The translations under genes were made by a program, and so were the position numbers. DNA of 64,000 nt from Dimorphilus gyrociliatus (taxonomy: Eukaryota > Animalia > Annelida): assembly GCA_904063045.1 (NCBI GenBank), contig CAJFCJ010000003.1, forward strand, positions 1-64,000, in the 5' to 3' direction. Below are positions 5,402-48,860 of this stretch, one piece after another. The notes below the pieces were generated by a model. It worked only from the letters and a program-made list of their open reading frames with translations, did not search any database and had not been told where the DNA came from. Within the stretch, counting starts at the first letter, position 1, and each line of letters starts with the position of its first letter.

Positions 5402-8400
5402 GTTCTTACTCTTGCATCTCACAATAATGGGGGATCTCCTGAAACTTTGTTGGAAGTTATTCAACTTTCATCAGAACTTAGATCTTAGTATCTAGTTCAA
5501 CATTACAAAAACCTAATCAGAAGTAAGGAGAGTCAAGGGGTTTGACGAACAGTACAAGTTGAATTCTATGTCTGATCATCCAGCTTACAAAAAAATTAAA
5601 CAAAAAATATTTCAAAATACAACAGTACTCATATGTTTATTCATACAAACAAACATACATTTATTACAAAATTCAACTTCCACAGTTGATATTACAATAA
5701 AACACATCTATACATTATTAGACATACAGTTACAAAAAATTATCTCTTCCATTCAATCTATGCACATTCATCAATCTTATGACAAAAATAAAATGCAAGG
5801 CAGGATACAATTGCAGAATTGGTCCTGACCTCCCCTTCAAGGTAGTGTAAGTGAAGCTATCTTCTGAAATGACCCTGATGAGTCTTTGCAAAAGGGGAAG
5901 ACGAAACCATGGTAGGTCAACCATACTTGGTTCCATTTCACTTAATACTAGATATATACTACATTAAGACATTAAATCATCAATCAACTTGAGATGTGAA
6001 GACTACTTGATTCATATTGTGCAATAAGTTCTTACTCTTGCATCTCACAATAATGGGGGATCTCCTGAAACTTTGTTGGAAGTTATTCAACTTTCATCAG
6101 AACTTAGATCTTAGTATCTAGTTCAACATTACAAAAACCTAATCAGAAGTAAGGAGAGTCAAGGGGTTTGACGAACAGTACAAGTTGAATTCTATGTCTG
6201 ATCATCCAGCTTACAAAAAAATTAAACAAAAAATATTTCAAAATACAACAGTACTCATATGTTTATTCATACAAACAAACATACATTTATTACAAAATTC
6301 AACTTCCACAGTTGATATTACAATAAAACACATCTATACATTATTAGACATACAGTTACAAAAAATTATCTCTTCCATTCAATCTATGCACATTCATCAA
6401 TCTTATGACAAAAATAAAATGCAAGGCAGGATACAATTGCAGAATTGGTCCTGACCTCCCCTTCAAGGTAGTGTAAGTGAAGCTATCTTCTGAAATGACC
6501 CTGATGAGTCTTTGCAAAAGGGGAAGACGAAACCATGGTAGGTCAACCATACTTGGTTCCATTTCACTTAATACTAGATATATACTACATTAAGACATTA
6601 AATCATCAATCAACTTGAGATGTGAAGACTACTTGATTCATATTGTGCAATAAGTTCTTACTCTTGCATCTCACAATAATGGGGGATCTCCTGAAACTTT
6701 GTTGGAAGTTATTCAACTTTCATCAGAACTTAGATCTTAGTATCTAGTTCAACATTACAAAAACCTAATCAGAAGTAAGGAGAGTCAAGGGGTTTGACGA
6801 ACAGTACAAGTTGAATTCTATGTCTGATCATCCAGCTTACAAAAAAATTAAACAAAAAATATTTCAAAATACAACAGTACTCATATGTTTATTCATACAA
6901 ACAAACATACATTTATTACAAAATTCAACTTCCACAGTTGATATTACAATAAAACACATCTATACATTATTAGACATACAGTTACAAAAAATTATCTCTT
7001 CCATTCAATCTATGCACATTCATCAATCTTATGACAAAAATAAAATGCAAGGCAGGATACAATTGCAGAATTGGTCCTGACCTCCCCTTCAAGGTAGTGT
7101 AAGTGAAGCTATCTTCTGAAATGACCCTGATGAGTCTTTGCAAAAGGGGAAGACGAAACCATGGTAGGTCAACCATACTTGGTTCCATTTCACTTAATAC
7201 TAGATATATACTACATTAAGACATTAAATCATCAATCAACTTGAGATGTGAAGACTACTTGATTCATATTGTGCAATAAGTTCTTACTCTTGCATCTCAC
7301 AATAATGGGGGATCTCCTGAAACTTTGTTGGAAGTTATTCAACTTTCATCAGAACTTAGATCTTAGTATCTAGTTCAACATTACAAAAACCTAATCAGAA
7401 GTAAGGAGAGTCAAGGGGTTTGACGAACAGTACAAGTTGAATTCTATGTCTGATCATCCAGCTTACAAAAAAATTAAACAAAAAATATTTCAAAATACAA
7501 CAGTACTCATATGTTTATTCATACAAACAAACATACATTTATTACAAAATTCAACTTCCACAGTTGATATTACAATAAAACACATCTATACATTATTAGA
7601 CATACAGTTACAAAAATTATCTCTTCCATTCAATCTATGCACATTCATCAATCTTATGACAAAAATAAAATGCAAGGCAGGATACAATTGCAGAATTGGT
7701 CCTGACCTCCCCTTCAAGGTAGTGTAAGTGAAGCTATCTTCTGAAATGACCCTGATGAGTCTTTGCAAAAGGGGAAGACGAAACCATGGTAGGTCAACCA
7801 TACTTGGTTCCATTTCACTTAATACTAGATATATACTACATTAAGACATTAAATCATCAATCAACTTGAGATGTGAAGACTACTTGATTCATATTGTGCA
7901 ATAAGTTCTTACTCTTGCATCTCACAATAATGGGGGATCTCCTGAAACTTTGTTGGAAGTTATTCAACTTTCATCAGAACTTAGATCTTAGTATCTAGTT
8001 CAACATTACAAAAACCTAATCAGAAGTAAGGAGAGTCAAGGGGTTTGACGAACAGTACAAGTTGAATTCTATGTCTGATCATCCAGCTTACAAAAAAATT
8101 AAACAAAAAATATTTCAAAATACAACAGTACTCATATGTTTATTCATACAAACAAACATACATTTATTACAAAATTCAACTTCCACAGTTGATATTACAA
8201 TAAAACACATCTATACATTATTAGACATACAGTTACAAAAAATTATCTCTTCCATTCAATCTATGCACATTCATCAATCTTATGACAAAAATAAAATGCA
8301 AGGCAGGATACAATTGCAGAATTGGTCCTGACCTCCCCTTCAAGGTAGTGTAAGTGAAGCTATCTTCTGAAATGACCCTGATGAGTCTTTGCAAAAGGGG

Positions 8401-9271
8401 AAGACGAAACCATGGTAGGTCAACCATACTTGGTTCCATTTCACTTAATACTAGATATATACTACATTAAGACATTAAATCATCAATCAACTTGAGATGT
8501 GAAGACTACTTGATTCATATTGTGCAATAAGTTCTTACTCTTGCATCTCACAATAATGGGGGATCTCCTGAAACTTTGTTGGAAGTTATTCAACTTTCAT
8601 CAGAACTTAGATCTTAGTATCTAGTTCAACATTACAAAAACCTAATCAGAAGTAAGGAGAGTCAAGGGGTTTGACGAACAGTACAAGTTGAATTCTATGT
8701 CTGATCATCCAGCTTACAAAAAAATTAAACAAAAAATATTTCAAAATACAACAGTACTCATATGTTTATTCATACAAACAAACATACATTTATTACAAAA
8801 TTCAACTTCCACAGTTGATATTACAATAAAACACATCTATACATTATTAGACATACAGTTACAAAAAATTATCTCTTCCATTCAATCTATGCACATTCAT
8901 CAATCTTATGACAAAAATAAAATGCAAGGCAGGATACAATTGCAGAATTGGTCCTGACCTCCCCTTCAAGGTAGTGTAAGTGAAGCTATCTTCTGAAATG
9001 ACCCTGATGAGTCTTTGCAAAAGGGGAAGACGAAACCATGGTAGGTCAACCATACTTGGTTCCATTTCACTTAATACTAGATATATACTACATTAAGACA
9101 TTAAATCATCAATCAACTTGAGATGTGAAGACTACTTGATTCATATTGTGCAATAAGTTCTTACTCTTGCATCTCACAATAATGGGGGATCTCCTGAAAC
9201 TTTGTTGGAAGTTATTCAACTTTCATCAGAACTTAGATCTTAGTATCTAGTTCAACATTACAAAAACCTAA
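5402..9271 (+). repeat. Tandem array of the 626-bp HHR unit (family B), about 6.2 near-identical copies
   Basis: Repeated ORFs start at 5559, 6185, 6811, 7437, 8062 and 8688 (period 625-626). One HHR per unit at 5870, 6496, 7122, 7747, 8373 and 8999. Confidence 0.97.
5870..5919 (+). ncRNA. Type I hammerhead ribozyme, family B representative (6 copies)
   Basis: TGACC-CTGATGA-GTCTTTGCAAAAGGGGAAGAC-GAAA-CCATGGTA-GGTCA. Perfect 5-bp stem I and a full catalytic core. Confidence 0.92.
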
Positions 9272-9373
9272 CCCTAACCCTAACCCTAACCTAAACCTAA
9301 CCCTAACCCTAACCTAACCCTAACCCTAACCCTAACCCTAACCCTAACCCTAACCCTAACCTAACCCTAACCC
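9266..9373 (+). repeat. Interstitial telomeric tract (CCCTAA with CCTAA variants)
   Basis: Direct read. TTAGGG-type repeat on the minus strand. Confidence 0.97.
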
Positions 9374-11893
9374 AGACTAAGTTAACCAACAAAACACATA
9401 TACCCCAAAAAACATTATAATGTTATTTTCAAAACTTACAAACATCAATACAAACAAAAAATTAAAGGCAAGGTAGGACTCAGTTAAAGAATTGATCCTA
9501 GCCTCCCCTTCAAGGTAGCAGTAAGAGAAGCTATACTCAGAAATGACCCTGATGAGTCTTTGCTAAAAGGGGAAGACGAAACCATGGTAGGTCAAAAATT
9601 CTTTGGCAATCATTTGAAAACTCAACACATTGATCAAAATAAAACATACATTCAACAAAAAAGTTCATTCTTCATAGTTGTACAAAAAGTTCTTACTCTT
9701 GCATTCCATCTTGGGATCTCCTGAAACTTTCGATGAAAGTTATTCAACTTTTGTCAGAACTCAGATCTTAGTGTCTAGTTCAACATTATGAAAACCTAAT
9801 CAGAAGTAAGGAGAGTCAAGAGGTTTTGAGGAACAGTACAACTTACAAACTTACAAACTTACACTTCACATCTGATCAACAAACAAACATACAAATACAA
9901 ACAAATACAAATGCAAACATAGATGCATCTATACATTCAAATATCACAGAAAACAATTTTCACCACAAACAATCTAAATTGCAAACAACAATAGACACAT
10001 ACTCAAAAACAAAAAATACTTATCTTAAAACCTACAAACATCAATACAACAAATCATTTTCATACAAGGTAAGACTAAGTTAACCAACAAAACACATATA
10101 CCCCAAAAAACATTATAATGTTATTTTCAAAACTTACAAACATCAATACAAACAAAAAATTAAAGGCAAGGTAGGACTCAGTTAAAGAATAGATCCTAGC
10201 CTCCCCTTCAAGGTAGCAGTAAGAGAAGCTATACTCAGAAATGACCCTGATGAGTCTTTGCTAAAAGGGGAAGACGAAACCATGGTAGGTCAAAAATTCT
10301 TTGGCAATCATTTGAAAACTCAACACATTGATCAAAATAAAACATACATTCAACAAAAAAGTTCATTCTTCATAGTTGTACAAAAAGTTCTTACTCTTGC
10401 ATTCCATCTTGGGATCTCCTGAAACTTTCGATGAAAGTTATTCAACTTTTGTCAGAACTCAGATCTTAGTGTCTAGTTCAACATTATGAAAACCTAATCA
10501 GAAGTAAGGAGAGTCAAGAGGTTTTGAGGAACAGTACAACTTACAAACTTACAAACTTACACTTCACATCTGATCAACAAACAAACATACAAATACAAAC
10601 AAATACAAATGCAAACATAGATGCATCTATACATTCAAATATCACAGAAAACAATTTTCACCACAAACAATCTAAATTGCAAACAACAATAGACACATAC
10701 TCAAAAACAAAAAATACTTATCTTAAAACCTACAAACATCAATACAACAAATCATTTTCATACAAGGTAAGACTAAGTTAACCAACAAAACACATATACC
10801 CCAAAAAACATTATAATGTTATTTTCAAAACTTACAAACATCAATACAAACAAAAAATTAAAGGCAAGGTAGGACTCAGTTAAAGAATTGATCCTAGCCT
10901 CCCCTTCAAGGTAGCAGTAAGAGAAGCTATACTCAGAAATGACCCTGATGAGTCTTTGCTAAAAGGGGAAGACGAAACCATGGTAGGTCAAAAATTCTTT
11001 GGCAATCATTTGAAAACTCAACACATTGATCAAAATAAAACATACATTCAACAAAAAAGTTCATTCTTCATAGTTGTACAAAAAGTTCTTACTCTTGCAT
11101 TCCATCTTGGGATCTCCTGAAACTTTCGATGAAAGTTATTCAACTTTTGTCAGAACTCAGATCTTAGTGTCTAGTTCAACATTATGAAAACCTAATCAGA
11201 AGTAAGGAGAGTCAAGAGGTTTTGAGGAACAGTACAACTTACAAACTTACAAACTTACACTTCACATCTGATCAACAAACAAACATACAAATACAAACAA
11301 ATACAAATGCAAACATAGATGCATCTATACATTCAAATATCACAGAAAACAATTTTCACCACAAACAATCTAAATTGCAAACAACAATAGACACATACTC
11401 AAAAACAAAAAATACTTATCTTAAAACCTACAAACATCAATACAACAAATCATTTTCATACAAGGTAAGACTAAGTTAACCAACAAAACACATATACCCC
11501 AAAAAACATTATAATGTTATTTTCAAAACTTACAAACATCAATACAAACAAAAAATTAAAGGCAAGGTAGGACTCAGTTAAAGAATTGATCCTAGCCTCC
11601 CCTTCAAGGTAGCAGTAAGAGAAGCTATACTCAGAAATGACCCTGATGAGTCTTTGCTAAAAGGGGAAGACGAAACCATGGTAGGTCAAAAATTCTTTGG
11701 CAATCATTTGAAAACTCAACACATTGATCAAAATAAAACATACATTCAACAAAAAAGTTCATTCTTCATAGTTGTACAAAAAGTTCTTACTCTTGCATTC
11801 CATCTTGGGATCTCCTGAAACTTTCGATGAAAGTTATTCAACTTTTGTCAGAACTCAGATCTTAGTGTCTAGTTCAACATTATGAAAACCTAA
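9374..11893 (+). repeat. Tandem array of the 698-bp HHR unit (family A), about 3.6 copies; begins mid-unit on the left and ends at the AAAACCTAA anchor on the right
   Basis: ORF repeats at 9826, 10524 and 11222. HHRs at 9544, 10242, 10940 and 11638. Both ends abut telomeric repeats. Confidence 0.97.
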
Positions 11894-11989
11894 CCCTAAC
11901 CCTAACCCTAACCCTAACCCTAACCTAACCCTAAACCCTAACCTAACCCTAACCCTAACCTAACCCTAACCTAACCTAACCTAACCCTA
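11888..11989 (+). repeat. Interstitial telomeric tract
   Basis: CCCTAA/CCTAA run. Confidence 0.97.
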
Positions 11990-12618
11990 TAAAAAATTAG
12001 GCATCAAAATACAACTATCTCTATGACCAAAATCATCTTCATAATCCTAATAGGAAACAAACTAAAAAAATTACAAAAAAATTACAAAAAACAAATCTCA
12101 ACTTGTTGACAACTATTACAAAAATCAACTTCAATGGTTGATATATACATTCACAATCACACATACACCTACACATAATGATACATATACATACATATAA
12201 CAATTTATGATTAGGCTTATAACCAAAAACTTACTGCAGGGAAGGATTCAATTGTAGAATTGATCCTCTCCTCCCCTTCAAGATAGTTCTTAGGTTATAC
12301 TATCCTCTGAATTGACCCTGATGAGTCTTTGCATTAAAAGGGGAAGACGAAACCATGGTAGGTCAACCATACTTGGCAACCATCTAGATTAATATATCCT
12401 AGGTTAAACATACTATTGCAATTTAAAACCAAATCAAAAACAAACAAACAGACATAAATTGATTAGTGATGGGAAGAGTACTTGTTTTAAAATGTACAAT
12501 AAGTTCTTACTCTTGCATTCCATTTCATTATGGGATCTTCTGAAAGTTTGGTGGAAGTTATTTGACTTTCATCAGAACTGAGACCTTAGTGTCTAGTTCA
12601 AACCTATATAAAACCTAA
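11990..12618 (+). mobile_element. Single diverged HHR unit (family C) between two telomeric tracts
   Basis: Homologous to families A and B around the HHR and in the 3' segment (AAGTTCTTACTCTTGCAT ... TCTAGTTCAA ... AAAACCTAA). Confidence 0.85.
12312..12366 (+). ncRNA. Type I hammerhead ribozyme, family C
   Basis: TTGACC-CTGATGA-GTCTTTGCATTAAAAGGGGAAGAC-GAAA-CCATGGTA-GGTCAA, with a 6-bp stem I. Confidence 0.92.
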
Positions 12619-12655
12619 CCCTAACCCTAACCTAACCCTAACCCTAACCCTAACC
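12613..12655 (+). repeat. Interstitial telomeric tract
   Basis: About 7 CCCTAA/CCTAA units. Confidence 0.95.
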
Positions 12656-13600
12656 AAAATTCTCCACTTTTCTAATATTCCATCAAATATTCTCCAATAT
12701 TCTCCAATATTCATCAATATTCCAAATTACCCAAAATTCTCCAATTTTCAAATATTCCATCAAATATTCCATCAAACACCATCAAATACTCTCAAATATT
12801 CATCGATATTCCAAATAACCCAAAATTCTCCAATTTTCTAACATTCCATCAAATATTCCATCAAACATCATCAAATACTCTCAAATATTCATCGATATTC
12901 CAAATTACCCAAAATTCTCCAATTTTCTAATATTCCATCAAATATTCCATCAAACACCATCAAATACTCTCAAATATTCATCGATATTCCAAATAACCCA
13001 AAATTCTCCAATTTTCTAATATTCCATCAAATATTCCATCAAACACCATCAAATACTCTCAAATATTCATCGATATTCCAAATAACCCAAAATTCTCCAA
13101 TTTTCTAACATTCCATCAAATATTCCATCAAACACCATCAAATACTCTCAAATATTCATCGATATTCCAAATAACCCAAAATTCTCCAATTTTCTAATAT
13201 TCCATCAAATATTCCTTCAAATACTCTCAAATATTCATCAATATTCCAAATTACCCAAAATTCTCCAATTTTCTAATATTTCATCAAATATTCCATTAAA
13301 TATTCTCCAATATTCAAGAATATTCCAAATAACCCAAAATTCTCTAATTTTCTAATATTCCATCAAATATTACATCAAATACTCTCTAATATTCTCCAGT
13401 ATTCTTAATTTCCCAAAATTCACCAATTTTTTAATATTCCATCAAATATTCCATCAAAAAGTATCAAATATTCTCTAATATTCATCAATATTCCAAATTT
13501 CCAAAAATTCTCCAATACTATCCAATATTATATTGTTCCATCAAATATTCAATTAAATATTCTCCAATATTCAAAATTCTCTAATATTATCCAGGAGAAA
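12656..13600. repeat. G-poor satellite with an 89-bp higher-order unit built from ATATTCCATCAA / AATATTCTCC sub-repeats
   Basis: TCCAAAT(T/A)ACCCAAAATTCTCC recurs at 12721, 12810, 12899, 12988, 13077 and 13166, then degenerates. Confidence 0.9.
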
Positions 13601-13610
13601 TATTAACAAA

Positions 13611-14112
13611 CTCTATCAGGTGGCAAATTAAAACAAGTCCATCTGTTGCCTCATACAATCAACTCCACCAGGTGGCAAACACCAACAGTGTCCACCAGGT
13701 GGCTAACCCTAACCATATCCACCAGGTGGCTAAAACTGAGACTGTCCACCAGGTGGCTCACACTAACAAAGTCCACCAGATGGCTAATTTAAACAAAGTC
13801 CACCAGGTGGCTAATTTAAACAAAGTCCACTAGGTGGCTAATTTAAACAAAGTCCAACAGGTGGCTAACCCTAACAAAGTCCACCAGGTGGCTAATGTTA
13901 ACAAAGTCCACCAGGTGGATAATACAAACAATGTCCACTAGGTGGCAAATACTAACAAAGTCCACCAGGTGGCTAACGTTAACAAAGGCCACCAGGTGGC
14001 TAACTCTAACAAAGTCCACCAGGTGGCTAACTCTAACAAAGTCTACCAGGTGGCTATTATGACCAATGTCCACCAGGCGCCTAATGCTAACCCTGTCCAC
14101 CAGGTGGCTACT
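13611..14112 (+). repeat. 27-bp minisatellite of about 18 units with conserved core GTCCACCAGGTGGCTAA (CTCF-motif-like) and a variable ~10-nt spacer
   Basis: Cores at 13665, 13692, 13719, 13746 and so on to 14097, with an exact 27-nt period. Confidence 0.92.
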
Positions 14113-14719
14113 ATCAATAATATTCAAGACACAAAATTAATCTATGCCTGTAATAAAAACGTAATAAAGACTTTTCCTTAGTCAAAGATCCTATTTACAA
14201 ACAATACAGAACGTTAAAAAAAAAAAAATTTTCAAAATTTTTCAAAGTCCAGACTCCAGCCATTTTACCGAACTTTCGGCAACCATAACTTTGTTAATAC
14301 TGCCCCAAATCGCCTGAAATTTTGTATGACCTTGAATCTCAACAAAACACTCAAACTGCAACAATAAAAAATTTTGACCTAAATTTTGACCTAGAACGTA
14401 GAATTTTTTTTTAAAAGTTATTAAAAAACAATGAGTAACCAAAGAACATTATTAGGTATATCTTTTCACCAAAACTTATATGAGCCCAAACTACATCTTC
14501 ATACCAAAAATCAACTTAAAAAAGCTATTAGAAGTTGGAGTTTTTTTCTCTATAGAATGATAGTATTTTTTTTTAAACGTTTTTAAAAAACAACAGCCAA
14601 ACTAAAAACATTTTTAGGTCATTTTTTACAGATCCATAATCAGCAAACAAAACTGTATATTTCCATAACTTATGAACTCAAAATTTTTTTGGGGACCCCT
14701 GTGTAACCTAACCCTAATG

Positions 14720-15935
14720 ATCAAATATCATTCAATATTATTCAACATTTTTAAATTCCTTTAAACATTACATCAAATATTTCATCAAGTATTCCATGTA
14801 ATAATCTTTAGCATTATTTAAAATTTTACATTCTTCAAAGTTCTTCAATGTTCTAAAACACAATCAAATATTCCATCAAATATTCTTCAATATTGTTCAA
14901 TATTTCAAATTCCCTCAAATTCTCCAATTTCCAAACATTCCATCTAATATTCCATCAAATATTCCAAATTACCTAAAATTATCCAATTTTCTTATATTCC
15001 ATCAAATATTCTGTTTTACCCAAAATTCTCCAATTTTCTAATCTTTCATCTAACACCATCAAATATTCTCCAATATTCAGCAATATTCCAAATTACCCAA
15101 AATTCTCTAATTTTCTAATCTTTCATCAAACACCATCAAATATTCTCCAGTATTCAACAATATTCCAAATGACCCAAAATTCTCCAATTTTCTAATATTC
15201 CATCAAATATTCCATCAAATATTCTCCAGTATTTTTCAATATACTCCAATTTTCAAAATTAGCCAATATTTCTTCATAATTTATTATTTCATCAAATATT
15301 CTTCAATGATCAAAATATTTAACTAAATTATCAAATATTTTAATTTTCCATCAAATATTCTCCAATATACTCAAATATTCCAAATTATCCAAAGTTCTTC
15401 AATATTTTAATATTCCATCAAGGATTCTCAAATATTCTCCAATACACTCAAATATTTCAAATCCTCCAAAATTTTTCCATATTTTAATATTCCATCAAAT
15501 AATCTCCAATATTATTTGATATTTTTATATTTCATCCAATATTCCTTCAAATTTTCTTCAATATTCCAAATTGTCCAATATTATTCTATATATTAATATT
15601 CTATCAAATATTCTTCCATATTCCATATGGATTTACAAATTCTTCAATATTCAGAATTCTTCAATAAACTCCAATATTTAAAATTCTACAAAACCTATTT
15701 TTCAATATTGTAAAATTCTATCAAATATTTGTTCAATATTCTCCAATATTTTCTAATAACTTTCCATATTTCAATATTCCATCAAATATTCTTCAATATC
15801 CTCTAATCTTCAATTATTCCAGCAAATATTCTCTATTTTTTTCCAAAGTTCCAAATTCTCTAATATTGTCCAATATTCTAATATTGCATTGAATACTCTT
15901 CAGTCTTCAAATAAAAATCTCCAATATCCAATATA
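14720..15935. repeat. Degenerate continuation of the ATATTC(C/T) satellite
   Basis: Same sub-repeats (AAATATTCCATCAA, AAAATTCTCCAATTTTCTAA) as 12656-13600. Confidence 0.85.
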
Positions 15936-16659
15936 TTTTCAGGAATAGATGAAACAACCACTTGAGCCCAACATTATTTTCAAACAGCCATAGCTCATAA
16001 ACAACTGAGCCAATTTGACTCAAATTTTGTACAGTGATTGGTTCATATTAGGACTAAGCTTGTACCAAATTTCAGGGAATTTGCAGCACTTTAAAATTTT
16101 TGAAAATTTCAGTGATCAACTTACAAGTTGAGGACAATAGTATTCAGCTGTAGGCTTTTTAATAATTAGTCTGGAGGCAATTGTAAAAAGCCTATGTTTT
16201 AAAAATCAATTAAAAAAGGGTTAATAAATTGGAAATATTGTGAGTATTTTAATTTGGTGAAATTGATAAAGTTATTGAGATAGCAGTTTTCTTCACCGTT
16301 TTTTAGAATTTCTATTGCATTTTTGTTGGTGATACTATAATAGCTTAGGCTAGGAGGTTAGGTTTAGATAGCAATTCCAAAACAGCTACACTGTCAGTGG
16401 AATTGTTAGGGGGTTGCCAGTCTGTAGTGATTGTGCTAATCCCTATCACTTGGCTTTCCTACCAAACCTAACAAAAAGTAGGAGTGCATCATCTTCAATT
16501 ACTGTTAAAGATGTCATTAAATCATTTGAGAATTTATGAGTTGAGGTTTTTGTCAAAAAATGATTACCTCCTCAGGGAAACTGTATATTTCACATATTTT
16601 TAAACACAAAAAAAATGATAAAGTCATTACAGTTAAGGTGAACCTAGTTGGCTAAAATT

Positions 16660-16959
16660 TTAATAAAACAAGTTTTCTTGAACTGTACATAATGTATCAT
16701 TAATATCAAATAATATTTCAACAATACAACAAAATAATTCATGATATTTATCAAATAAATCTTTTAATTTTTGTTGATCAGATTCACTTAATTCTGAAGA
16801 CATTTCCACAAATTCTTCTTCTTCTTCTACTAATTTATTAAAAATGGAATGCACTTGTTTAATAGTTAGTGAGTCTTCAAATCCAAGTCCAGTTATTTCA
16901 TCTTTAACAATTGTTAAATAATACAGCTTATTCTCAATCAAGTATTCAAATTCACTCAT
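16660..16959 (-). CDS. Small acidic helical protein (99 aa), paralogue of 18720-18989
   Basis: ATG start. Aligns without gaps to the MDEFQY ORF (M-x-E-F-x-Y, T23-G24-x-x-F27, L68, Y72, L75, I79, D85). Confidence 0.65.
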   Translation of the reverse strand: MSEFEYLIENKLYYLTIVKDEITGLGFEDSLTIKQVHSIFNKLVEEEEEFVEMSSELSESDQQKLKDLFDKYHELFCCIVEILFDINDTLCTVQENLFY

Positions 16960-17145
16960 CTTTGAAGGAGAGAAAATATTAAAATTAATGCAAAAATTTT
17001 TTTAACTTGTATTAATTTGTATTCTAAATAAAAAAAAAAAATTTTAAAAAAACATACAACTTTCCAATGATTTAGTAAAATATAATTGTTACAAAAAAAT
17101 AATTCTAAAAAGCAATACAACACATTTTTTTAATTTAATTTGTTT

Positions 17146-18315: not shown

Positions 18316-18719
18316 TTTCTGTTTGATGGAATATAAAACAATATATATATATATATATATATATAAAATAGAGAAATAAAAAAACATCCTGAATTAAAAC
18401 CAAAAATAACATATACAACAGTTTATTTTCAAAAATACTATTGTTTTTAAATTGAATTTTGTTTGTTTGCGAAGAAAATGCATGAATTTATAACAATCAA
18501 CAGATATTTTTCTTTTTTATGACAGCATTTTTACAACAATGTTTGCTTTAAATTTAATAAGTACAATTTTTTAACAATATATATAGGACTGGTATCTTTA
18601 TTTTCAAGATGATTATTCTTTTAACAGCATTAACCTAAATGACAAAAATTAACAATAACTGACTACAAAGGAAAAAAATATAAAACCAAAAAAGATAATC
18701 TAGTTAGTTAATTTTTTTT

Positions 18720-36731: not shown

Positions 36732-36781
36732 TGGCCCTGATGAGTCTTTGCTAAAGGGGAAGACGAAACCATGGTAGGTCA
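36732..36781 (+). ncRNA. Hammerhead ribozyme, first unit of the RT copy 2 3' UTR (second, slightly diverged unit at 37446-37495)
   Basis: Same core and stems as 5258-5307. Confidence 0.9.
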
Positions 36782-37699
36782 AAAATTCTTTGGCAATCAT
36801 TTGAAAACTCAACACATTGACCAAAATAAAACATACATTCAACAAAAAATTCATTCTTCATAGTTGTACAAAAAGTTCTTACTCTTGCATTCCATCTTGG
36901 GATCTCCTGAAACTTTCGATGAAAGTTATTCGACTTTTGTCAGAACTCAGATCTTAGTGTCTAGTTCAACATTATGAAAACCTAATCAGAAGTAAGGAGA
37001 GTCAAGAGGTTTGAGGAACAGTACAACTTACAAACTTACAAACTTACACTTCACCTCTGATCAACAAACAAACACAAGTACATTCTTTCCATAAAATACA
37101 AACAAATACAAACACAAACATAGATGCATCTATACATTCAAATATCACAAAAGACAATTTTTACCACAAACAATCTAAATTGCAAACAACAATAGATACA
37201 TACTCAAAAACAAAAAATACTTATCTTAAAACCTACAAACCATCAATACAACAAATCAATTTCATACAAGGTAAGACTAAGTTAACCAACAAAACACATA
37301 TACCCCAAAAAACATTATAATGTTATTTTCCAAAAACTTACAAACATCAATACAAACAAAAAATTAAAGGCAAGGTAGGACTCAGTGATAGAATTGATCC
37401 TAGCCTCCCCTTCAAGGTAGCAGTAAGAGAAGCTATACTCAGAAATGACCCTGATGAGTCTTTGCTAAAGGGGAAGACGAAACCATGGTAGGTCAAAAAT
37501 TCTTTGGCAATCATTTGAAAACTCAACACATTGACCAAAATAAAACATACATTCAACAAAAAATTCATTCTTCATAGTTGTACAAAAAGTTCTTACTCTT
37601 GCATTCCATATTGTGATCTCCTGAAACTTTCGATGAAAGTTATTCGACTTTTGTCAGAACTCAGATCTTAGTGTCTAGTTCAACATTATGAAAACCTAA

Positions 37700-40600
37700 T
37701 CAGAAGTAAGGAGAGTCAAGAGGTTTTGAGGAACAGTACAACTTACAAACTTACAAACTTACACTTCACATCTGATCAACAAACAAACATACAAATACAA
37801 ACAAATACAAATGCAAACATAGATGCATCTATACATTCAAATATCACAGAAAACAATTTTCACCACAAACAATCTAAATTGCAAACAACAATAGACACAT
37901 ACTCAAAAACAAAAAATACTTATCTTAAAACCTACAAACATCAATACAACAAATCATTTTCATACAAGGTAAGACTAAGTTAACCAACAAAACACATATA
38001 CCCCAAAAAACATTATAATGTTATTTTCAAAACTTACAAACATCAATACAAACAAAAAATTAAAGGCAAGGTAGGACTCAGTTAAAGAATTGATCCTAGC
38101 CTCCCCTTCAAGGTAGCAGTAAGAGAAGCTATACTCAGAAATGACCCTGATGAGTCTTTGCTAAAAGGGGAAGACGAAACCATGGTAGGTCAAAAATTCT
38201 TTGGCAATCATTTGAAAACTCAACACATTGATCAAAATAAAACATACATTCAACAAAAAAGTTCATTCTTCATAGTTGTACAAAAAGTTCTTACTCTTGC
38301 ATTCCATCTTGGGATCTCCTGAAACTTTCGATGAAAGTTATTCAACTTTTGTCAGAACTCAGATCTTAGTGTCTAGTTCAACATTATGAAAACCTAATCA
38401 GAAGTAAGGAGAGTCAAGAGGTTTTGAGGAACAGTACAACTTACAAACTTACAAACTTACACTTCACATCTGATCAACAAACAAACATACAAATACAAAC
38501 AAATACAAATGCAAACATAGATGCATCTATACATTCAAATATCACAGAAAACAATTTTCACCACAAACAATCTAAATTGCAAACAACAATAGACACATAC
38601 TCAAAAACAAAAAATACTTATCTTAAAACCTACAAACATCAATACAACAAATCATTTTCATACAAGGTAAGACTAAGTTAACCAACAAAACACATATACC
38701 CCAAAAAACATTATAATGTTATTTTCAAAACTTACAAACATCAATACAAACAAAAAATTAAAGGCAAGGTAGGACTCAGTTAAAGAATTGATCCTAGCCT
38801 CCCCTTCAAGGTAGCAGTAAGAGAAGCTATACTCAGAAATGACCCTGATGAGTCTTTGCTAAAAGGGGAAGACGAAACCATGGTAGGTCAAAAATTCTTT
38901 GGCAATCATTTGAAAACTCAACACATTGATCAAAATAAAACATACATTCAACAAAAAAGTTCATTCTTCATAGTTGTACAAAAAGTTCTTACTCTTGCAT
39001 TCCATCTTGGGATCTCCTGAAACTTTCGATGAAAGTTATTCAACTTTTGTCAGAACTCAGATCTTAGTGTCTAGTTCAACATTATGAAAACCTAATCAGA
39101 AGTAAGGAGAGTCAAGAGGTTTTGAGGAACAGTACAACTTACAAACTTACAAACTTACACTTCACATCTGATCAACAAACAAACATACAAATACAAACAA
39201 ATACAAATGCAAACATAGATGCATCTATACATTCAAATATCACAGAAAACAATTTTCACCACAAACAATCTAAATTGCAAACAACAATAGACACATACTC
39301 AAAAACAAAAAATACTTATCTTAAAACCTACAAACATCAATACAACAAATCATTTTCATACAAGGTAAGACTAAGTTAACCAACAAAACACATATACCCC
39401 AAAAAACATTATAATGTTATTTTCAAAACTTACAAACATCAATACAAACAAAAAATTAAAGGCAAGGTAGGACTCAGTTAAAGAATTGATCCTAGCCTCC
39501 CCTTCAAGGTAGCAGTAAGAGAAGCTATACTCAGAAATGACCCTGATGAGTCTTTGCTAAAAGGGGAAGACGAAACCATGGTAGGTCAAAAATTCTTTGG
39601 CAATCATTTGAAAACTCAACACATTGATCAAAATAAAACATACATTCAACAAAAAAGTTCATTCTTCATAGTTGTACAAAAAGTTCTTACTCTTGCATTC
39701 CATCTTGGGATCTCCTGAAACTTTCGATGAAAGTTATTCAACTTTTGTCAGAACTCAGATCTTAGTGTCTAGTTCAACATTATGAAAACCTAATCAGAAG
39801 TAAGGAGAGTCAAGAGGTTTTGAGGAACAGTACAACTTACAAACTTACAAACTTACACTTCACATCTGATCAACAAACAAACATACAAATACAAACAAAT
39901 ACAAATGCAAACATAGATGCATCTATACATTCAAATATCACAGAAAACAATTTTCACCACAAACAATCTAAATTGCAAACAACAATAGACACATACTCAA
40001 AACAAAAAATACTTATCTTAAAACCTACAAACATCAATACAACAAATCATTTTCATACAAGGTAAGACTAAGTTAACCAACAAAACACATATACCCCAAA
40101 AAACATTATAATGTTATTTTCAAAACTTACAAACATCAATACAAACAAAAAATTAAAGGCAAGGTAGGACTCAGTTAAAGAATTGATCCTAGCCTCCCCT
40201 TCAAGGTAGCAGTAAGAGAAGCTATACTCAGAAATGACCCTGATGAGTCTTTGCTAAAAGGGGAAGACGAAACCATGGTAGGTCAAAAATTCTTTGGCAA
40301 TCATTTGAAAACTCAACACATTGATCAAAATAAAACATACATTCAACAAAAAAGTTCATTCTTCATAGTTGTACAAAAAGTTCTTACTCTTGCATTCCAT
40401 CTTGGGATCTCCTGAAACTTTCGATGAAAGTTATTCAACTTTTGTCAGAACTCAGATCTTAGTGTCTAGTTCAACATTATGAAAACCTAATCAGAAGTAA
40501 GGAGAGTCAAGAGGTTTTGAGGAACAGTACAACTTACAAACTTACAAACTTACACTTCACATCTGATCAACAAACAAACATACAAATACAAACAAATACA

Positions 40601-43600
40601 AATGCAAACATAGATGCATCTATACATTCAAATATCACAGAAAACAATTTTCACCACAAACAATCTAAATTGCAAACAACAATAGACACATACTCAAAAA
40701 CAAAAAATACTTATCTTAAAACCTACAAACATCAATACAACAAATCATTTTCATACAAGGTAAGACTAAGTTAACCAACAAAACACATATACCCCAAAAA
40801 ACATTATAATGTTATTTTCAAAACTTACAAACATCAATACAAACAAAAAATTAAAGGCAAGGTAGGACTCAGTTAAAGAATTGATCCTAGCCTCCCCTTC
40901 AAGGTAGCAGTAAGAGAAGCTATACTCAGAAATGACCCTGATGAGTCTTTGCTAAAAGGGGAAGACGAAACCATGGTAGGTCAAAAATTCTTTGGCAATC
41001 ATTTGAAAACTCAACACATTGATCAAAATAAAACATACATTCAACAAAAAAGTTCATTCTTCATAGTTGTACAAAAAGTTCTTACTCTTGCATTCCATCT
41101 TGGGATCTCCTGAAACTTTCGATGAAAGTTATTCAACTTTTGTCAGAACTCAGATCTTAGTGTCTAGTTCAACATTATGAAAACCTAATCAGAAGTAAGG
41201 AGAGTCAAGAGGTTTTGAGGAACAGTACAACTTACAAACTTACAAACTTACACTTCACATCTGATCAACAAACAAACATACAAATACAAACAAATACAAA
41301 TGCAAACATAGATGCATCTATACATTCAAATATCACAGAAAACAATTTTCACCACAAACAATCTAAATTGCAAACAACAATAGACACATACTCAAAAACA
41401 AAAAATACTTATCTTAAAACCTACAAACATCAATACAACAAATCATTTTCATACAAGGTAAGACTAAGTTAACCAACAAAACACATATACCCCAAAAAAC
41501 ATTATAATGTTATTTTCAAAACTTACAAACATCAATACAAACAAAAAATTAAAGGCAAGGTAGGACTCAGTTAAAGAATTGATCCTAGCCTCCCCTTCAA
41601 GGTAGCAGTAAGAGAAGCTATACTCAGAAATGACCCTGATGAGTCTTTGCTAAAAGGGGAAGACGAAACCATGGTAGGTCAAAAATTCTTTGGCAATCAT
41701 TTGAAAACTCAACACATTGATCAAAATAAAACATACATTCAACAAAAAGTTCATTCTTCATAGTTGTACAAAAAGTTCTTACTCTTGCATTCCATCTTGG
41801 GATCTCCTGAAACTTTCGATGAAAGTTATTCAACTTTTGTCAGAACTCAGATCTTAGTGTCTAGTTCAACATTATGAAAACCTAATCAGAAGTAAGGAGA
41901 GTCAAGAGGTTTTGAGGAACAGTACAACTTACAAACTTACAAACTTACACTTCACATCTGATCAACAAACAAACATACAAATACAAACAAATACAAATGC
42001 AAACATAGATGCATCTATACATTCAAATATCACAGAAAACAATTTTCACCACAAACAATCTAAATTGCAAACAACAATAGACACATACTCAAAAACAAAA
42101 ATACTTATCTTAAAACCTACAAACATCAATACAACAAATCATTTTCATACAAGGTAAGACTAAGTTAACCAACAAAACACATATACCCCAAAAAACATTA
42201 TAATGTTATTTTCAAAACTTACAAACATCAATACAAACAAAAAATTAAAGGCAAGGTAGGACTCAGTTAAAGAATAGATCCTAGCCTCCCCTTCAAGGTA
42301 GCAGTAAGAGAAGCTATACTCAGAAATGACCCTGATGAGTCTTTGCTAAAAGGGGAAGACGAAACCATGGTAGGTCAAAAATTCTTTGGCAATCATTTGA
42401 AAACTCAACACATTGATCAAAATAAAACATACATTCAACAAAAAAGTTCATTCTTCATAGTTGTACAAAAAGTTCTTACTCTTGCATTCCATCTTGGGAT
42501 CTCCTGAAACTTTCGATGAAAGTTATTCAACTTTTGTCAGAACTCAGATCTTAGTGTCTAGTTCAACATTATGAAAACCTAATCAGAAGTAAGGAGAGTC
42601 AAGAGGTTTTGAGGAACAGTACAACTTACAAACTTACAAACTTACACTTCACATCTGATCAACAAACAAACATACAAATACAAACAAATACAAATGCAAA
42701 CATAGATGCATCTATACATTCAAATATCACAGAAAACAATTTTCACCACAAACAATCTAAATTGCAAACAACAATAGACACATACTCAAAAACAAAAATA
42801 CTTATCTTAAAACCTACAAACATCAATACAACAAATCATTTTCATACAAGGTAAGACTAAGTTAACCAACAAAACACATATACCCAAAAAACATTATAAT
42901 GTTATTTTCAAAACTTACAAACATCAATACAAACAAAAAATTAAAGGCAAGGTAGGACTCAGTTAAAGAATTGATCCTAGCCTCCCTTCAAGGTAGCAGT
43001 AAGAGAAGCTATACTCAGAAATGACCCTGATGAGTCTTTGCTAAAAGGGGAAGACGAAACCATGGTAGGTCAAAAATTCTTTGGCAATCATTTGAAAACT
43101 CAACACATTGATCAAAATAAAACATACATTCAACAAAAAAGTTCATTCTTCATAGTTGTACAAAAAGTTCTTACTCTTGCATTCCATCTTGGGATCTCCT
43201 GAAACTTTCGATGAAAGTTATTCAACTTTTGTCAGAACTCAGATCTTAGTGTCTAGTTCAACATTATGAAAACCTAATCAGAAGTAAGGAGAGTCAAGAG
43301 GTTTTGAGGAACAGTACAACTTACAAACTTACAAACTTACACTTCACATCTGATCAACAAACAAACATACAAATACAAACAAATACAAATGCAAACATAG
43401 ATGCATCTATACATTCAAATATCACAGAAAACAATTTTCACCACAAACAATCTAAATTGCAAACAACAATAGACACATACTCAAAAACAAAAATACTTAT
43501 CTTAAAACCTACAAACATCAATACAACAAATCATTTTCATACAAGGTAAGACTAAGTTAACCAACAAAACACATATACCCCAAAAAACATTATAATGTTA

Positions 43601-46600
43601 TTTTCAAAACTTACAAACATCAATACAAACAAAAAATTAAAGGCAAGGTAGGACTCAGTTAAAGAATTGATCCTAGCCTCCCCTTCAAGGTAGCAGTAAG
43701 AGAAGCTATACTCAGAAATGACCCTGATGAGTCTTTGCTAAAAGGGGAAGACGAAACCATGGTAGGTCAAAAATTCTTTGGCAATCATTTGAAAACTCAA
43801 CACATTGATCAAAATAAAACATACATTCAACAAAAAAGTTCATTCTTCATAGTTGTACAAAAAGTTCTTACTCTTGCATTCCATCTTGGGATCTCCTGAA
43901 ACTTTCGATGAAAGTTATTCAACTTTTGTCAGAACTCAGATCTTAGTGTCTAGTTCAACATTATGAAAACCTAATCAGAAGTAAGGAGAGTCAAGAGGTT
44001 TTGAGGAACAGTACAACTTACAAACTTACAAACTTACACTTCACATCTGATCAACAAACAAACATACAAATACAAACAAATACAAATGCAAACATAGATG
44101 CATCTATACATTCAAATATCACAGAAAACAATTTTCACCACAAACAATCTAAATTGCAAACAACAATAGACACATACTCAAAAACAAAAAATACTTATCT
44201 TAAAACCTACAAACATCAATACAACAAATCATTTTCATACAAGGTAAGACTAAGTTAACCAACAAAACACATATACCCCAAAAAACATTATAATGTTATT
44301 TTCAAAACTTACAAACATCAATACAAACAAAAAATTAAAGGCAAGGTAGGACTCAGTTAAAGAATTGATCCTAGCCTCCCCTTCAAGGTAGCAGTAAGAG
44401 AAGCTATACTCAGAAATGACCCTGATGAGTCTTTGCTAAAAGGGGAAGACGAAACCATGGTAGGTCAAAAATTCTTTGGCAATCATTTGAAAACTCAACA
44501 CATTGATCAAAATAAAACATACATTCAACAAAAAAGTTCATTCTTCATAGTTGTACAAAAAGTTCTTACTCTTGCATTCCATCTTGGGATCTCCTGAAAC
44601 TTTCGATGAAAGTTATTCAACTTTTGTCAGAACTCAGATCTTAGTGTCTAGTTCAACATTATGAAAACCTAATCAGAAGTAAGGAGAGTCAAGAGGTTTT
44701 GAGGAACAGTACAACTTACAAACTTACAAACTTACACTTCACATCTGATCAACAAACAAACATACAAATACAAACAAATACAAATGCAAACATAGATGCA
44801 TCTATACATTCAAATATCACAGAAAACAATTTTCACCACAAACAATCTAAATTGCAAACAACAATAGACACATACTCAAAAACAAAAAATACTTATCTTA
44901 AAACCTACAAACATCAATACAACAAATCATTTTCATACAAGGTAAGACTAAGTTAACCAACAAAACACATATACCCCAAAAAACATTATAATGTTATTTT
45001 CAAAACTTACAAACATCAATACAAACAAAAAATTAAAGGCAAGGTAGGACTCAGTTAAAGAATTGATCCTAGCCTCCCCTTCAAGGTAGCAGTAAGAGAA
45101 GCTATACTCAGAAATGACCCTGATGAGTCTTTGCTAAAAGGGGAAGACGAAACCATGGTAGGTCAAAAATTCTTTGGCAATCATTTGAAAACTCAACACA
45201 TTGATCAAAATAAAACATACATTCAACAAAAAGTTCATTCTTCATAGTTGTACAAAAAGTTCTTACTCTTGCATTCCATCTTGGGATCTCCTGAAACTTT
45301 CGATGAAAGTTATTCAACTTTTGTCAGAACTCAGATCTTAGTGTCTAGTTCAACATTATGAAAACCTAATCAGAAGTAAGGAGAGTCAAGAGGTTTTGAG
45401 GAACAGTACAACTTACAAACTTACAAACTTACACTTCACATCTGATCAACAAACAAACATACAAATACAAACAAATACAAATGCAAACATAGATGCATCT
45501 ATACATTCAAATATCACAGAAAACAATTTTCACCACAAACAATCTAAATTGCAAACAACAATAGACACATACTCAAAAACAAAAAATACTTATCTTAAAA
45601 CCTACAAACATCAATACAACAAATCATTTTCATACAAGGTAAGACTAAGTTAACCAACAAAACACATATACCCCAAAAAACATTATAATGTTATTTTCAA
45701 AACTTACAAACATCAATACAAACAAAAAATTAAAGGCAAGGTAGGACTCAGTTAAAGAATTGATCCTAGCCTCCCCTTCAAGGTAGCAGTAAGAGAAGCT
45801 ATACTCAGAAATGACCCTGATGAGTCTTTGCTAAAAGGGGAAGACGAAACCATGGTAGGTCAAAAATTCTTTGGCAATCATTTGAAAACTCAACACATTG
45901 ATCAAAATAAAACATACATTCAACAAAAAAGTTCATTCTTCATAGTTGTACAAAAAGTTCTTACTCTTGCATTCCATCTTGGGATCTCCTGAAACTTTCG
46001 ATGAAAGTTATTCAACTTTTGTCAGAACTCAGATCTTAGTGTCTAGTTCAACATTATGAAAACCTAATCAGAAGTAAGGAGAGTCAAGAGGTTTTGAGGA
46101 ACAGTACAACTTACAAACTTACAAACTTACACTTCACATCTGATCAACAAACAAACATACAAATACAAACAAATACAAATGCAAACATAGATGCATCTAT
46201 ACATTCAAATATCACAGAAAACAATTTTCACCACAAACAATCTAAATTGCAAACAACAATAGACACATACTCAAAAACAAAAAATACTTATCTTAAAACC
46301 TACAAACATCAATACAACAAATCATTTTCATACAAGGTAAGACTAAGTTAACCAACAAAACACATATACCCCAAAAAACATTATAATGTTATTTTCAAAA
46401 CTTACAAACATCAATACAAACAAAAAATTAAAGGCAAGGTAGGACTCAGTTAAAGAATTGATCCTAGCCTCCCCTTCAAGGTAGCAGTAAGAGAAGCTAT
46501 ACTCAGAAATGACCCTGATGAGTCTTTGCTAAAAGGGGAAGACGAAACCATGGTAGGTCAAAAATTCTTTGGCAATCATTTGAAAACTCAACACATTGAT

Positions 46601-48860
46601 CAAAATAAAACATACATTCAACAAAAAAGTTCATTCTTCATAGTTGTACAAAAAGTTCTTACTCTTGCATTCCATCTTGGGATCTCCTGAAACTTTCGAT
46701 GAAAGTTATTCAACTTTTGTCAGAACTCAGATCTTAGTGTCTAGTTCAACATTATGAAAACCTAATCAGAAGTAAGGAGAGTCAAGAGGTTTTGAGGAAC
46801 AGTACAACTTACAAACTTACAAACTTACACTTCACATCTGATCAACAAACAAACATACAAATACAAACAAATACAAATGCAAACATAGATGCATCTATAC
46901 ATTCAAATATCACAGAAAACAATTTTCACCACAAACAATCTAAATTGCAAACAACAATAGACACATACTCAAAAACAAAAAATACTTATCTTAAAACCTA
47001 CAAACATCAATACAACAAATCATTTTCATACAAGGTAAGACTAAGTTAACCAACAAAACACATATACCCCAAAAAACATTATAATGTTATTTTCAAAACT
47101 TACAAACATCAATACAAACAAAAAATTAAAGGCAAGGTAGGACTCAGTTAAAGAATTGATCCTAGCCTCCCCTTCAAGGTAGCAGTAAGAGAAGCTATAC
47201 TCAGAAATGACCCTGATGAGTCTTTGCTAAAAGGGGAAGACGAAACCATGGTAGGTCAAAAATTCTTTGGCAATCATTTGAAAACTCAACACATTGATCA
47301 AAATAAAACATACATTCAACAAAAAAGTTCATTCTTCATAGTTGTACAAAAAGTTCTTACTCTTGCATTCCATCTTGGGATCTCCTGAAACTTTCGATGA
47401 AAGTTATTCAACTTTTGTCAGAACTCAGATCTTAGTGTCTAGTTCAACATTATGAAAACCTAATCAGAAGTAAGGAGAGTCAAGAGGTTTTGAGGAACAG
47501 TACAACTTACAAACTTACAAACTTACACTTCACATCTGATCAACAAACAAACATACAAATACAAACAAATACAAATGCAAACATAGATGCATCTATACAT
47601 TCAAATATCACAGAAAACAATTTTCACCACAAACAATCTAAATTGCAAACAACAATAGACACATACTCAAAAACAAAAAATACTTATCTTAAAACCTACA
47701 AACATCAATACAACAAATCATTTTCATACAAGGTAAGACTAAGTTAACCAACAAAACACATATACCCCAAAAAACATTATAATGTTATTTTCAAAACTTA
47801 CAAACATCAATACAAACAAAAAATTAAAGGCAAGGTAGGACTCAGTTAAAGAATTGATCCTAGCCTCCCCTTCAAGGTAGCAGTAAGAGAAGCTATACTC
47901 AGAAATGACCCTGATGAGTCTTTGCTAAAAGGGGAAGACGAAACCATGGTAGGTCAAAAATTCTTTGGCAATCATTTGAAAACTCAACACATTGATCAAA
48001 ATAAAACATACATTCAACAAAAAAGTTCATTCTTCATAGTTGTACAAAAAGTTCTTACTCTTGCATTCCATCTTGGGATCTCCTGAAACTTTCGATGAAA
48101 GTTATTCAACTTTTGTCAGAACTCAGATCTTAGTGTCTAGTTCAACATTATGAAAACCTAATCAGAAGTAAGGAGAGTCAAGAGGTTTTGAGGAACAGTA
48201 CAACTTACAAACTTACAAACTTACACTTCACATCTGATCAACAAACAAACATACAAATACAAACAAATACAAATGCAAACATAGATGCATCTATACATTC
48301 AAATATCACAGAAAACAATTTTCACCACAAACAATCTAAATTGCAAACAACAATAGACACATACTCAAAAACAAAAAATACTTATCTTAAAACCTACAAA
48401 CATCAATACAACAAATCATTTTCATACAAGGTAAGACTAAGTTAACCAACAAAACACATATACCCCAAAAAACATTATAATGTTATTTTCAAAACTTACA
48501 AACATCAATACAAACAAAAAATTAAAGGCAAGGTAGGACTCAGTTAAAGAATTGATCCTAGCCTCCCCTTCAAGGTAGCAGTAAGAGAAGCTATACTCAG
48601 AAATGACCCTGATGAGTCTTTGCTAAAAGGGGAAGACGAAACCATGGTAGGTCAAAAATTCTTTGGCAATCATTTGAAAACTCAACACATTGATCAAAAT
48701 AAAACATACATTCAACAAAAAAGTTCATTCTTCATAGTTGTACAAAAAGTTCTTACTCTTGCATTCCATCTTGGGATCTCCTGAAACTTTCGATGAAAGT
48801 TATTCAACTTTTGTCAGAACTCAGATCTTAGTGTCTAGTTCAACATTATGAAAACCCTAA
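37700..48860 (+). repeat. Tandem array of the 698-bp HHR unit (family A), about 16 near-identical copies
   Basis: Sixteen ORF repeats from 37726 to 48188 (period 695-698). HHRs from 38142-38192 to 48604-48654. Ends at ATGAAAACCCTAA. Confidence 0.97.
38142..38192 (+). ncRNA. Type I hammerhead ribozyme, family A representative (20 canonical copies in the window)
   Basis: TGACC-CTGATGA-GTCTTTGCTAAAAGGGGAAGAC-GAAA-CCATGGTA-GGTCA, with predicted cleavage after A38187. Confidence 0.92.

Follow-up and report, generated by a model that had tools for sequence, protein, structure and literature searches.

A chain of telomere-attached Penelope-like retroelements and hammerhead ribozyme units at a chromosome end of the annelid Dimorphilus gyrociliatus

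How do arrays of near-identical, ribozyme-bearing units come to stand between telomeric repeats at the end of an animal chromosome? The question is raised by the first 64 kb (hereafter the window) of the 3.23-Mb scaffold CAJFCJ010000003.1 of Dimorphilus gyrociliatus (assembly GCA_904063045.1). Positions 1-50495 of this window are a head-to-tail series of retroelement additions at a chromosome end, which amount to about 50 kb of lengthening; the additions comprise a Penelope-like element (PLE), with an open reading frame (ORF) for a reverse transcriptase (RT), and non-coding tandem units of 626 or 698 bp, each with a hammerhead ribozyme (HHR) motif. Taken as a whole, the locus is in our opinion best explained by telomere-primed copying of multi-unit templates with template switching, in which a circular template is optional, and we assign to this explanation a probability of roughly 0.55. 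The basis of all our readings of templates and RNA is genomic DNA, namely the assembly and the contigs of public DNA runs. Throughout the chain the + strand carries the telomeric C-strand, and the chromosome end therefore lies to the left of the window; the 3' ends of all elements point to the centromere and abut telomeric repeats, which on this strand is the arrangement expected if the 3' end of the G-strand primes complementary DNA (cDNA) synthesis on element RNA. Called host genes begin at about 50788, on the centromere side of the chain.

The strongest evidence comes from the junctions between units and telomere. Three same-strand arrays were identified by a periodicity scan and by BLAST of one unit against the window, with 626-bp units repeated 6.2 times (array 1), 698-bp units repeated 3.6 times (array 2) and 698-bp units repeated 17.1 times (array 3, in which they span 36919-48860). 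A first-pass annotation of this DNA had described the same three arrays with one HHR per unit, which is correct except that the 16 units it gave for array 3 are about 17. It had also placed the right ends of the arrays at a single unit-internal motif fused to telomeric repeats, and this holds for all three: each terminates at the same unit position, AAAACC(C)TAA (hereafter the anchor), where CCCTAA/CCTAA repeats follow without interruption. Three more such junctions are present at 12618, 48920 and 50478, for a total of six 3' junctions, all at the sole CCTAA of the unit (the motif occurs exactly once per unit). The coincidence of four independent ends at one among about 650 positions is far beyond random expectation. 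The left ends fall at differing points, likewise as annotated: array 2 starts in mid-unit and is capped by telomeric repeats at 9373/9374, while arrays 1 and 3 are continuous with the 3' untranslated region (UTR) of the RT element. One detail had to be revised, as the telomeric repeat is mostly CCCTAA and not CCTAA (the TTAGG type originally named); the CCTAA variants may in part be homopolymer errors of the long reads.

The fourth telomeric tract contains in addition a fragment of about 12-17 nt (11 nt of it non-telomeric) identical to the bases that precede the anchor of the 626-bp unit. This micro-insert is an abortive addition inside a telomeric tract, an outcome that recombination would not yield. 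Because of the six fixed 3' junctions, the strand orientation at the scaffold end, the capped 5' truncations and the abortive micro-insert, there is good support for the view that units and RT elements were added by reverse transcription, with the telomeric G-strand as primer and the single CCUAA as the point of priming.

From the host side outward, the additions follow each other in the order 50131-50495, 49744-50130, 48978-49743, a telomeric tract with the micro-insert, a 36-kb unit (12657-48860) that ends in array 3, a single unit, array 2, and an RT copy with array 1. Listed by coordinate, the features of the chain are:

1..5302, + strand: RT element copy 1, cut off on its 5' side by the scaffold end; it stops at the first HHR cleavage site of the 3' UTR.
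5380..5400, + strand: chimeric joint at which the 698-type 3' UTR passes into a 626-type unit, inside an 18-nt block identical in all families (alignment and sliding identity).
5400..9271, + strand: array 1, 626-bp units repeated 6.2 times, one HHR per unit, ending at the anchor AAAACCTAA.
9267..9373, + strand: telomeric tract 1, C-strand (Tandem Repeats Finder).
9374..11893, + strand: array 2, 698-bp units repeated 3.6 times, 5'-truncated in mid-unit with a telomeric cap, ending at the anchor; T>A at 10191.
11889..11989, + strand: telomeric tract 2 (Tandem Repeats Finder).
11990..12618, + strand: lone unit of a third, diverged family, with its HHR at 12318 and the same anchor at its end.
12614..12656, + strand: telomeric tract 3 (junction reading).
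12657..30377, + strand: upstream 17.7 kb of the 36-kb unit, with minisatellites and accessory ORFs, including one of 509 aa at 26765-28294.
30378..35435, + strand: intact 1685-aa ORF with a weak SGNH-like region, a Penelope-like RT, a GIY-YIG-like remnant and a Ser/Lys-rich tail.
35436..36776, + strand: 3' UTR as far as the first HHR cleavage site, with a G-U wobble in helix I of that HHR.
36777..38187, + strand: edge monomers of array 3, namely a 714-nt variant, which has about 25 differences plus a 17-bp insert, followed by a hybrid monomer.
38188..48860, + strand: homogeneous part of array 3, with 15 complete 698-nt monomers, then 212 nt of a last one up to the anchor; T>A at 42276.
48853..48977, + strand: telomeric tract 4 (Tandem Repeats Finder); the micro-insert at 48905-48920 corresponds to the last bases of the 626-type unit.
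48978..50130, + strand: two older additions with a 397-bp part in common, each opening with a minimal HHR (49347, 49744) and closing in short telomeric repeats (49716-49745, 50113-50130).
50131..50495, + strand: oldest small HHR element, with its HHR at 50250 and the anchor plus telomeric repeats at 50474-50496, where it ends in AAAACCTAACCTAACCC.

The internal structure of the arrays can be followed in units cut at the predicted cleavage site. Cutting the sequence between CCATGGTA and GGTCA reveals 30 hammerhead sites, which lie 625-626 or 695-698 nt apart. In array 1 six cleavage-to-cleavage monomers measure 625-626 nt, and the first one, a hybrid, 612 nt. Array 3 opens with the 714-nt variant, followed by the hybrid, in which the variants cease between 37646 and 37724, an interval that includes an anchor at 37690-37699; the 15 full monomers and the terminal part that follow are essentially identical. 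The divergence in array 3 is thus confined to the units at the RT-side edge, and the telomere-side edge of both arrays 2 and 3 is consensus. Of 19 copies, just two carry a T>A variant, one in array 2 and the other in array 3; at this unit position array 2 reads T, A, T, T, and the short-read consensus is T. All 30 HHR sites read alike over the cleavage point, with no scars of end-to-end jumps, and since each array is moreover family-pure, it is unlikely that copying jumped from end to end between HHR-cut monomers. An apparent higher-order period of 1395 bp in array 3 was rejected, as it is a product of single-base indels rather than a genuine dimer repeat. The units are non-coding (their sole ORFs are TTG-started, low-complexity and 81-96 aa long), and the minimum free energy structure of the unit RNA is mostly open (z = -2.5).

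The predicted ribozyme consists of helix I (UGACC/GGUCA), CUGAUGA, helix II (GUCUU/AAGAC), GAAA and a 2-bp helix III with the loop CAUG, with cleavage after GUA. A motif scan recovered 30 motifs with an identical core and one more at 50250. Four families with 10-25% difference in their flanks all have the same 50-nt core, and in an alignment of six distinct HHRs (the four families, the copy at 50250 and that of a related RT contig) 98.6% of the helix cells are paired, with 3 compensatory pairs. There are no Rfam matches at the gathering score, the best being 17.2 bits versus a cut-off of 48.5 (RF00008), and relaxed thresholds give weak Hammerhead_3 matches only, so that the identity of the HHR rests on the core motif, the three helices and their covariation; a sub-threshold Rfam score is expected for minimal, dimer-type HHRs of PLEs (PMC4209133). 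The core and the covarying helices point to a type I hammerhead, in which ACCAUGGU forms an 8-nt palindrome in helix III. Such a palindromic form is that of metazoan type I HHRs that are inactive alone and cut as dimers when in tandem (PMC4209133). Exact-pattern HHR scans of metagenomes gave no match.

The ribozyme belongs to a larger 3' module. Predicted cleavage does not adjoin the anchor but lies 212 nt upstream of it (175 nt in the oldest copy), so that the order is HHR, then single CCUAA. Between the two there are two hairpins, kept across families via one-sided changes that preserve pairing, while the remainder of the unit is variable, A/C-rich and largely unpaired. The two 397-bp copies within 49341-50130, which are 98.7% identical and have short telomeric tracts of their own, represent a different small telomere-attached family; their HHRs are minimal, with no helix III and one extra base before helix II.

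What enzyme could have carried out the copying? The 1685-aa ORF contains the Penelope-type RT motifs ADKG, RPVVS, LDVKNMY, AMG and YLDD, and its homologues carry PF00078, PF28514 and PF26215, although a Pfam hmmscan of the ORFs of the window gave no RT or GIY-YIG match even at E = 10. Its nearest relatives are two proteins with 45-48% identity, one of them annotated in D. gyrociliatus; the next relatives carry both RVT_1 and GIY-YIG domains, and their C-terminal endonuclease (EN) has no counterpart in the aligned 1685-aa ORF. What is left between the RT thumb and the Ser/Lys-rich tail (aa ~1380-1486, 34495-34835) is a GIY-YIG-like remnant common to the two closest paralogues, which keeps the CxxC and PxGL spacing (~90 aa) and in which the catalytic Tyr, Arg and Glu positions are replaced; the match to GIY-YIG by hhalign is weak (P = 8e-4, probability 24%). 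The RT motifs, the domains of the homologues and the lost EN positions bear out the initial identification of the protein as a PLE RT without endonuclease, and they support the conclusion that no working endonuclease is encoded, the remnant being apparently dead.

In a tree built without an Athena reference sequence, three endonuclease-less RTs of the Dimorphilus type form a clade (100/100) that is sister to two EN-bearing (EN+) proteins (100/99) and lies among EN+ elements. It has been remarked that EN-minus families arise within EN+ clades (PMC8557442); the position of the RT beside EN+ elements fits this remark and speaks against simple membership in the rotifer Athena clade. The telomere-attached way of life was probably derived independently here, from an EN-bearing lineage. 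A related RT contig (P0002, 45% identical) has a type I HHR about 930 nt after its ORF (8251-8300), with compensatory changes in helices I and II; it stops 75 nt past this HHR, ahead of any anchor position, and in the paralogous RT gene DgyrCDS14925 a masked run of N lies directly downstream. A possible lead is a stretch in the N-terminal half of the RT ORF (32130-32705) that may form a degenerate alpha/beta domain resembling SGNH/GDSL, and to which part of the 509-aa ORF is related (27809-28060); the scores for this reading are weak (atlas 0.80, model pLDDT 63, Foldseek TM <=0.5).

A comparison of the two RT copies is informative about the relationship between RT bodies and arrays. Positions 1-5400 align to 31466-36870, with 98.8% identity between 1..5302 and 31466-36776; copy 1 has a 660-aa ORF at 1979-3961 that matches the C-terminal part of the 1685-aa ORF at 99% identity. 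Upstream of 1979 the ORF of copy 1 is broken by 1-nt indels; about 20 single-base deletions relative to the second copy, mostly in homopolymers, are found in 1-2000 and probably reflect low polishing quality at the scaffold end, so that the broken ORF may not be real. The two bodies are identical over 2.2 kb of coding sequence and differ by 24 substitutions (2.8%) in the 3' UTR, while the arrays attached to them belong to families that are more than 10% apart. Both 3' UTRs carry a first HHR, upstream of which they are about 10% different from the 698-bp unit and from which onward they are identical to it. The joins between body and array are seamless and fall, for copy 1, in the 18-nt shared block near 5380-5400 and, for copy 2, in a 78-nt interval. 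Identical coding sequence, divergent arrays and seamless joins together imply that arrays and bodies have separate histories.

These results can be accommodated in the following scheme. The RNA of the autonomous PLE would end in the 3' module, composed of a dimer-type type I HHR, about 200 nt with two hairpins, and the single CCUAA. The telomeric G-overhang would pair with CCUAA and prime reverse transcription, yielding a full or 5'-truncated cDNA that telomerase would then re-cap. The 626/698-bp tandem units would be separately evolving, non-coding passengers that carry the same 3' module and can be added to the end either together with an RT body or by themselves. Their most likely template would be a concatemeric unit RNA transcribed from existing arrays and left uncut, or only partly cut, by the weak, dimer-dependent HHR, on which priming could begin at any internal anchor; homology-guided template switching, at the RNA/cDNA level, would join unit RNA to the RNA of an RT body. 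Circular unit RNA would be an optional template and is not required.

The form of the template is the point at which this scheme departs from the one originally proposed for the locus, in which an HHR-cut unit RNA is ligated into a circle of 626 or 698 nt, the overhang primes at its CCUAA, and the PLE RT runs around it many times, one event per array. The priming half of that proposal stands by virtue of the junctions, the orientation and the caps, but we consider the circular half unlikely. A circle would account well for arrays that are internally near-identical and pure for one family even though both families coexist, for right ends fixed at the only CCUAA with varying left ends, and for cleavage sites free of scars; a switch from circle to RT-body RNA would also account for the divergent units at the RT-side edge. 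Furthermore, a dimer-type HHR with a palindromic helix III would cut multimers and spare monomer circles (PMC4209133), and a scheme from circle to tandem cDNA has been proposed for PLE-mobilised retrozymes (PMC7229834). However, all of these features also arise from concatemeric linear templates, and the sequence requires no circle. The distribution of the T>A variant, with one A among the four readings of array 2 and the same rare A in a single unit of array 3, fits the copying of a heterogeneous concatemer and speaks against a single monomer circle; the largely unpaired unit RNA is unlike the self-paired circles of retrozymes, and arrays 1 and 3 each follow on from an RT body without a break, through seamless joins in shared sequence. 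Several points weigh in turn against the concatemer. The near-perfect identity of 15 units needs an amplifying step that concatemer copying alone does not supply, and since internal priming and 5' truncation shorten arrays, units must be reiterated in some manner, be it by a circle, by realignment or by DNA exchange. The T>A shared by two arrays could stem from gene conversion or from mis-polishing, and the polishing of long reads can homogenise repeats, a concern in a scaffold with many 1-nt deletions in its first 2 kb. Finally, the anchor is just 5-7 nt long and stands 212 nt away from the HHR, whereas the repeats of Terminons, as described in PMC6431247, are directly beside it. Reiteration of a particular kind, in which the PLE RT adds a ribozyme RNA of 0.6-0.7 kb repeatedly, either around a circle or by realignment of TTAGG on CCUAA, would amount to a macro-template version of telomerase-style addition between rounds of telomerase; we regard it as a tentative idea, with the odds clearly against it.

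Two further explanations would dispense with RNA-level array formation. If units were inserted as single copies, arrays could have grown at the DNA level by unequal sister-chromatid exchange, by slippage, or by break-induced replication from one chromosome end to another, like that of alternative lengthening of telomeres, and the chimeras would be recombinants. Subtelomeres are prone to recombination; the chimeric joints do fall in blocks of identity, the RT copies are mosaic (identical in coding sequence versus 2.8% divergence in the 3' UTR), and edge units more divergent than interior ones are the classic pattern of satellites. Yet divergence is limited to the RT-side edge, array 2 is isolated between two telomeric tracts and has a canonical 3' junction, which implies that it was inserted as an array, and the abortive insert indicates that RT priming at the anchor is active here. 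The micro-insert, the stand-alone array 2, the one-sided edge pattern and the scar-free cleavage sites favor an RT-level process, and growth at the DNA level seems to us improbable. Much less probable still is that the locus is an artefact of a long-read assembly which expanded or mis-joined a repeat at the scaffold end. Such a suspicion is fostered by the deletions near the scaffold end just mentioned, by unit differences that are mainly homopolymer indels, and by the fact that no contig among the short-read contigs listed spans the stretch. Against it, contigs of public short-read DNA runs reproduce both unit types and the junctions from anchor to CCCTAA, so that the fixed junction claimed at the outset recurs in other data. 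One other locus in these contigs has an anchor followed by 17 nt of telomere and then a truncated unit, and under a second organism label a related unit runs into telomere-like repeats. The depth of sequence words in units relative to the 3' UTR, which is a rough measure, is about 7.8 for the 698-bp and about 3.1 for the 626-bp unit in one run (X2), near the ratios of about 10 and 3.1 in the window. The internal telomeric tracts, moreover, differ in sequence from each other.

How much of this is new? The first-pass annotation spoke of a ribozyme-templated route of telomere elongation alongside telomerase. Telomere priming is upheld, but it is the known mode of Athena and Terminons, and the copying of circles into tandem repeats had already been proposed for retrozymes; what we describe is the Athena/Terminon mechanism of chromosome-end extension, appearing here in a new host and a new form. 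According to PMC6431247 and PMC8557442, EN-deficient PLEs (Athena, Coprina and Terminons) attach to G-overhangs via reverse-complement telomeric repeats beside an HHR, and capped 5' truncations and long chains are described for them. The likeness to the present locus extends to the PLE RT without a working EN, to 3' ends on telomeric repeats in the G-overhang orientation, to a telomere-complementary motif downstream of the HHR, to 5' truncations with telomeric caps, and to long head-to-tail chains. A giant unit with extra ORFs may be a further point in common, since telomeric tracts are separated here by 36 kb. By contrast, the host is here an annelid with repeats of the TTAGGG type, whereas PMC8557442 describes Athena as rotifer-specific. 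The RT, which still has a GIY-YIG-like remnant, falls beside EN+ PLEs in the tree, and in place of repeats that directly adjoin the HHR there is one CCUAA at a distance of 212 nt downstream. The 3' module, moreover, occurs in 6-17 successive copies and is also inserted alone.

The tandem units themselves resemble the metazoan non-LTR (long terminal repeat) retrozymes (PMC7229834), which are also non-coding tandem repeats with a type I HHR and a short palindromic helix III, for which dependence on a PLE RT has been proposed, and for which the copying of a primed HHR circular RNA into tandem cDNA by a PLE RT has already been put forward. HHR tandem repeats near telomeric sequences had been noted earlier (PMC4209133). 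Retrozymes are defined by a small (~170-400 nt), highly self-paired RNA, unlike the 626-698-nt units with their weakly self-paired RNA; the present units, known here from DNA, also have the same 3' module as an autonomous element, and their site of priming by the telomere is a defined one. The Drosophila elements HeT-A, TART and TAHRE (PMC5537684) likewise form head-to-tail, 5'-truncated arrays at chromosome ends, have an A/C-rich sense strand, and include non-autonomous partners that use the RT of another element; they are, however, non-LTR elements of the LINE type and replace telomerase, while in the annelid telomerase repeats lie between the additions and the RT is Penelope-like. As for telomerase itself, PLE RTs belong to the sister lineage of TERT, as stated in PMC8557442, a short alignment motif pairs with the 3' end of the G-strand in both systems, and one template may be copied repeatedly; the template is here 0.6-0.7 kb long and includes a ribozyme, no dedicated RNA subunit is known, and reiteration is a proposal only.

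The new elements of the picture are thus an annelid host with ordinary TTAGGG-type telomeres, in a literature in which, as far as we searched it, the telomere-attached PLEs of animals are essentially those of bdelloid rotifers; a likely independent origin from an EN+ lineage; and a single short anchor, 212 nt from the ribozyme, with arrays of 6-17 copies of the 3' module that can be inserted without an RT body. The anchor provides a defined start point for writing a non-coding HHR unit onto a chromosome end, a kind of site that retrozyme-type tandem repeats have lacked so far. Telomere-attached PLEs bear on the link between retroelements and telomerase, and if the arrays did come from reiterated copying of one RNA they would constitute a natural intermediate between retrotransposition and telomerase action. 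The locus is also a possible test system for how PLE RTs start and switch templates.

Some other features of the region are worth recording. That the whole of 12657..30377 belongs to the RT element is suggested by its place between a telomeric tract and the RT ORF; no second copy of it is present elsewhere in the 64-kb window, and a homology search with its 509-aa ORF gave no usable match. Right after telomeric tract 3, where the 36-kb unit has its 5' end, minisatellites with periods of 89, 79, 77, 57 and 27 bp are dense at 12655-15800 and 13599-14110, and a GC-rich tandem repeat of 37/76 bp is found at 25761-25953 within the otherwise AT-rich 36-kb unit. The sense strand of the chain (1-50495) is A/C-rich (A 39%, G 12.5%), which makes the opposite strand, the one that continues into the telomeric G-strand, rich in G and T like that of the telomeric elements of Drosophila; the host side (50496-64000) has a weak A/C excess only (A 34%, T 33%, C 16%, G 17%). 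A 119-bp stretch of the host-side genes (54395-54513) is 87% identical, in inverted orientation, to 26319-26437 of the 36-kb unit. The host side itself (50788-64000) contains a subtelomeric gene family, a series of paralogues on one strand that encode 330-390 aa and have no Pfam domains; its 390-aa member is about 30% identical to DgyrCDS9729.

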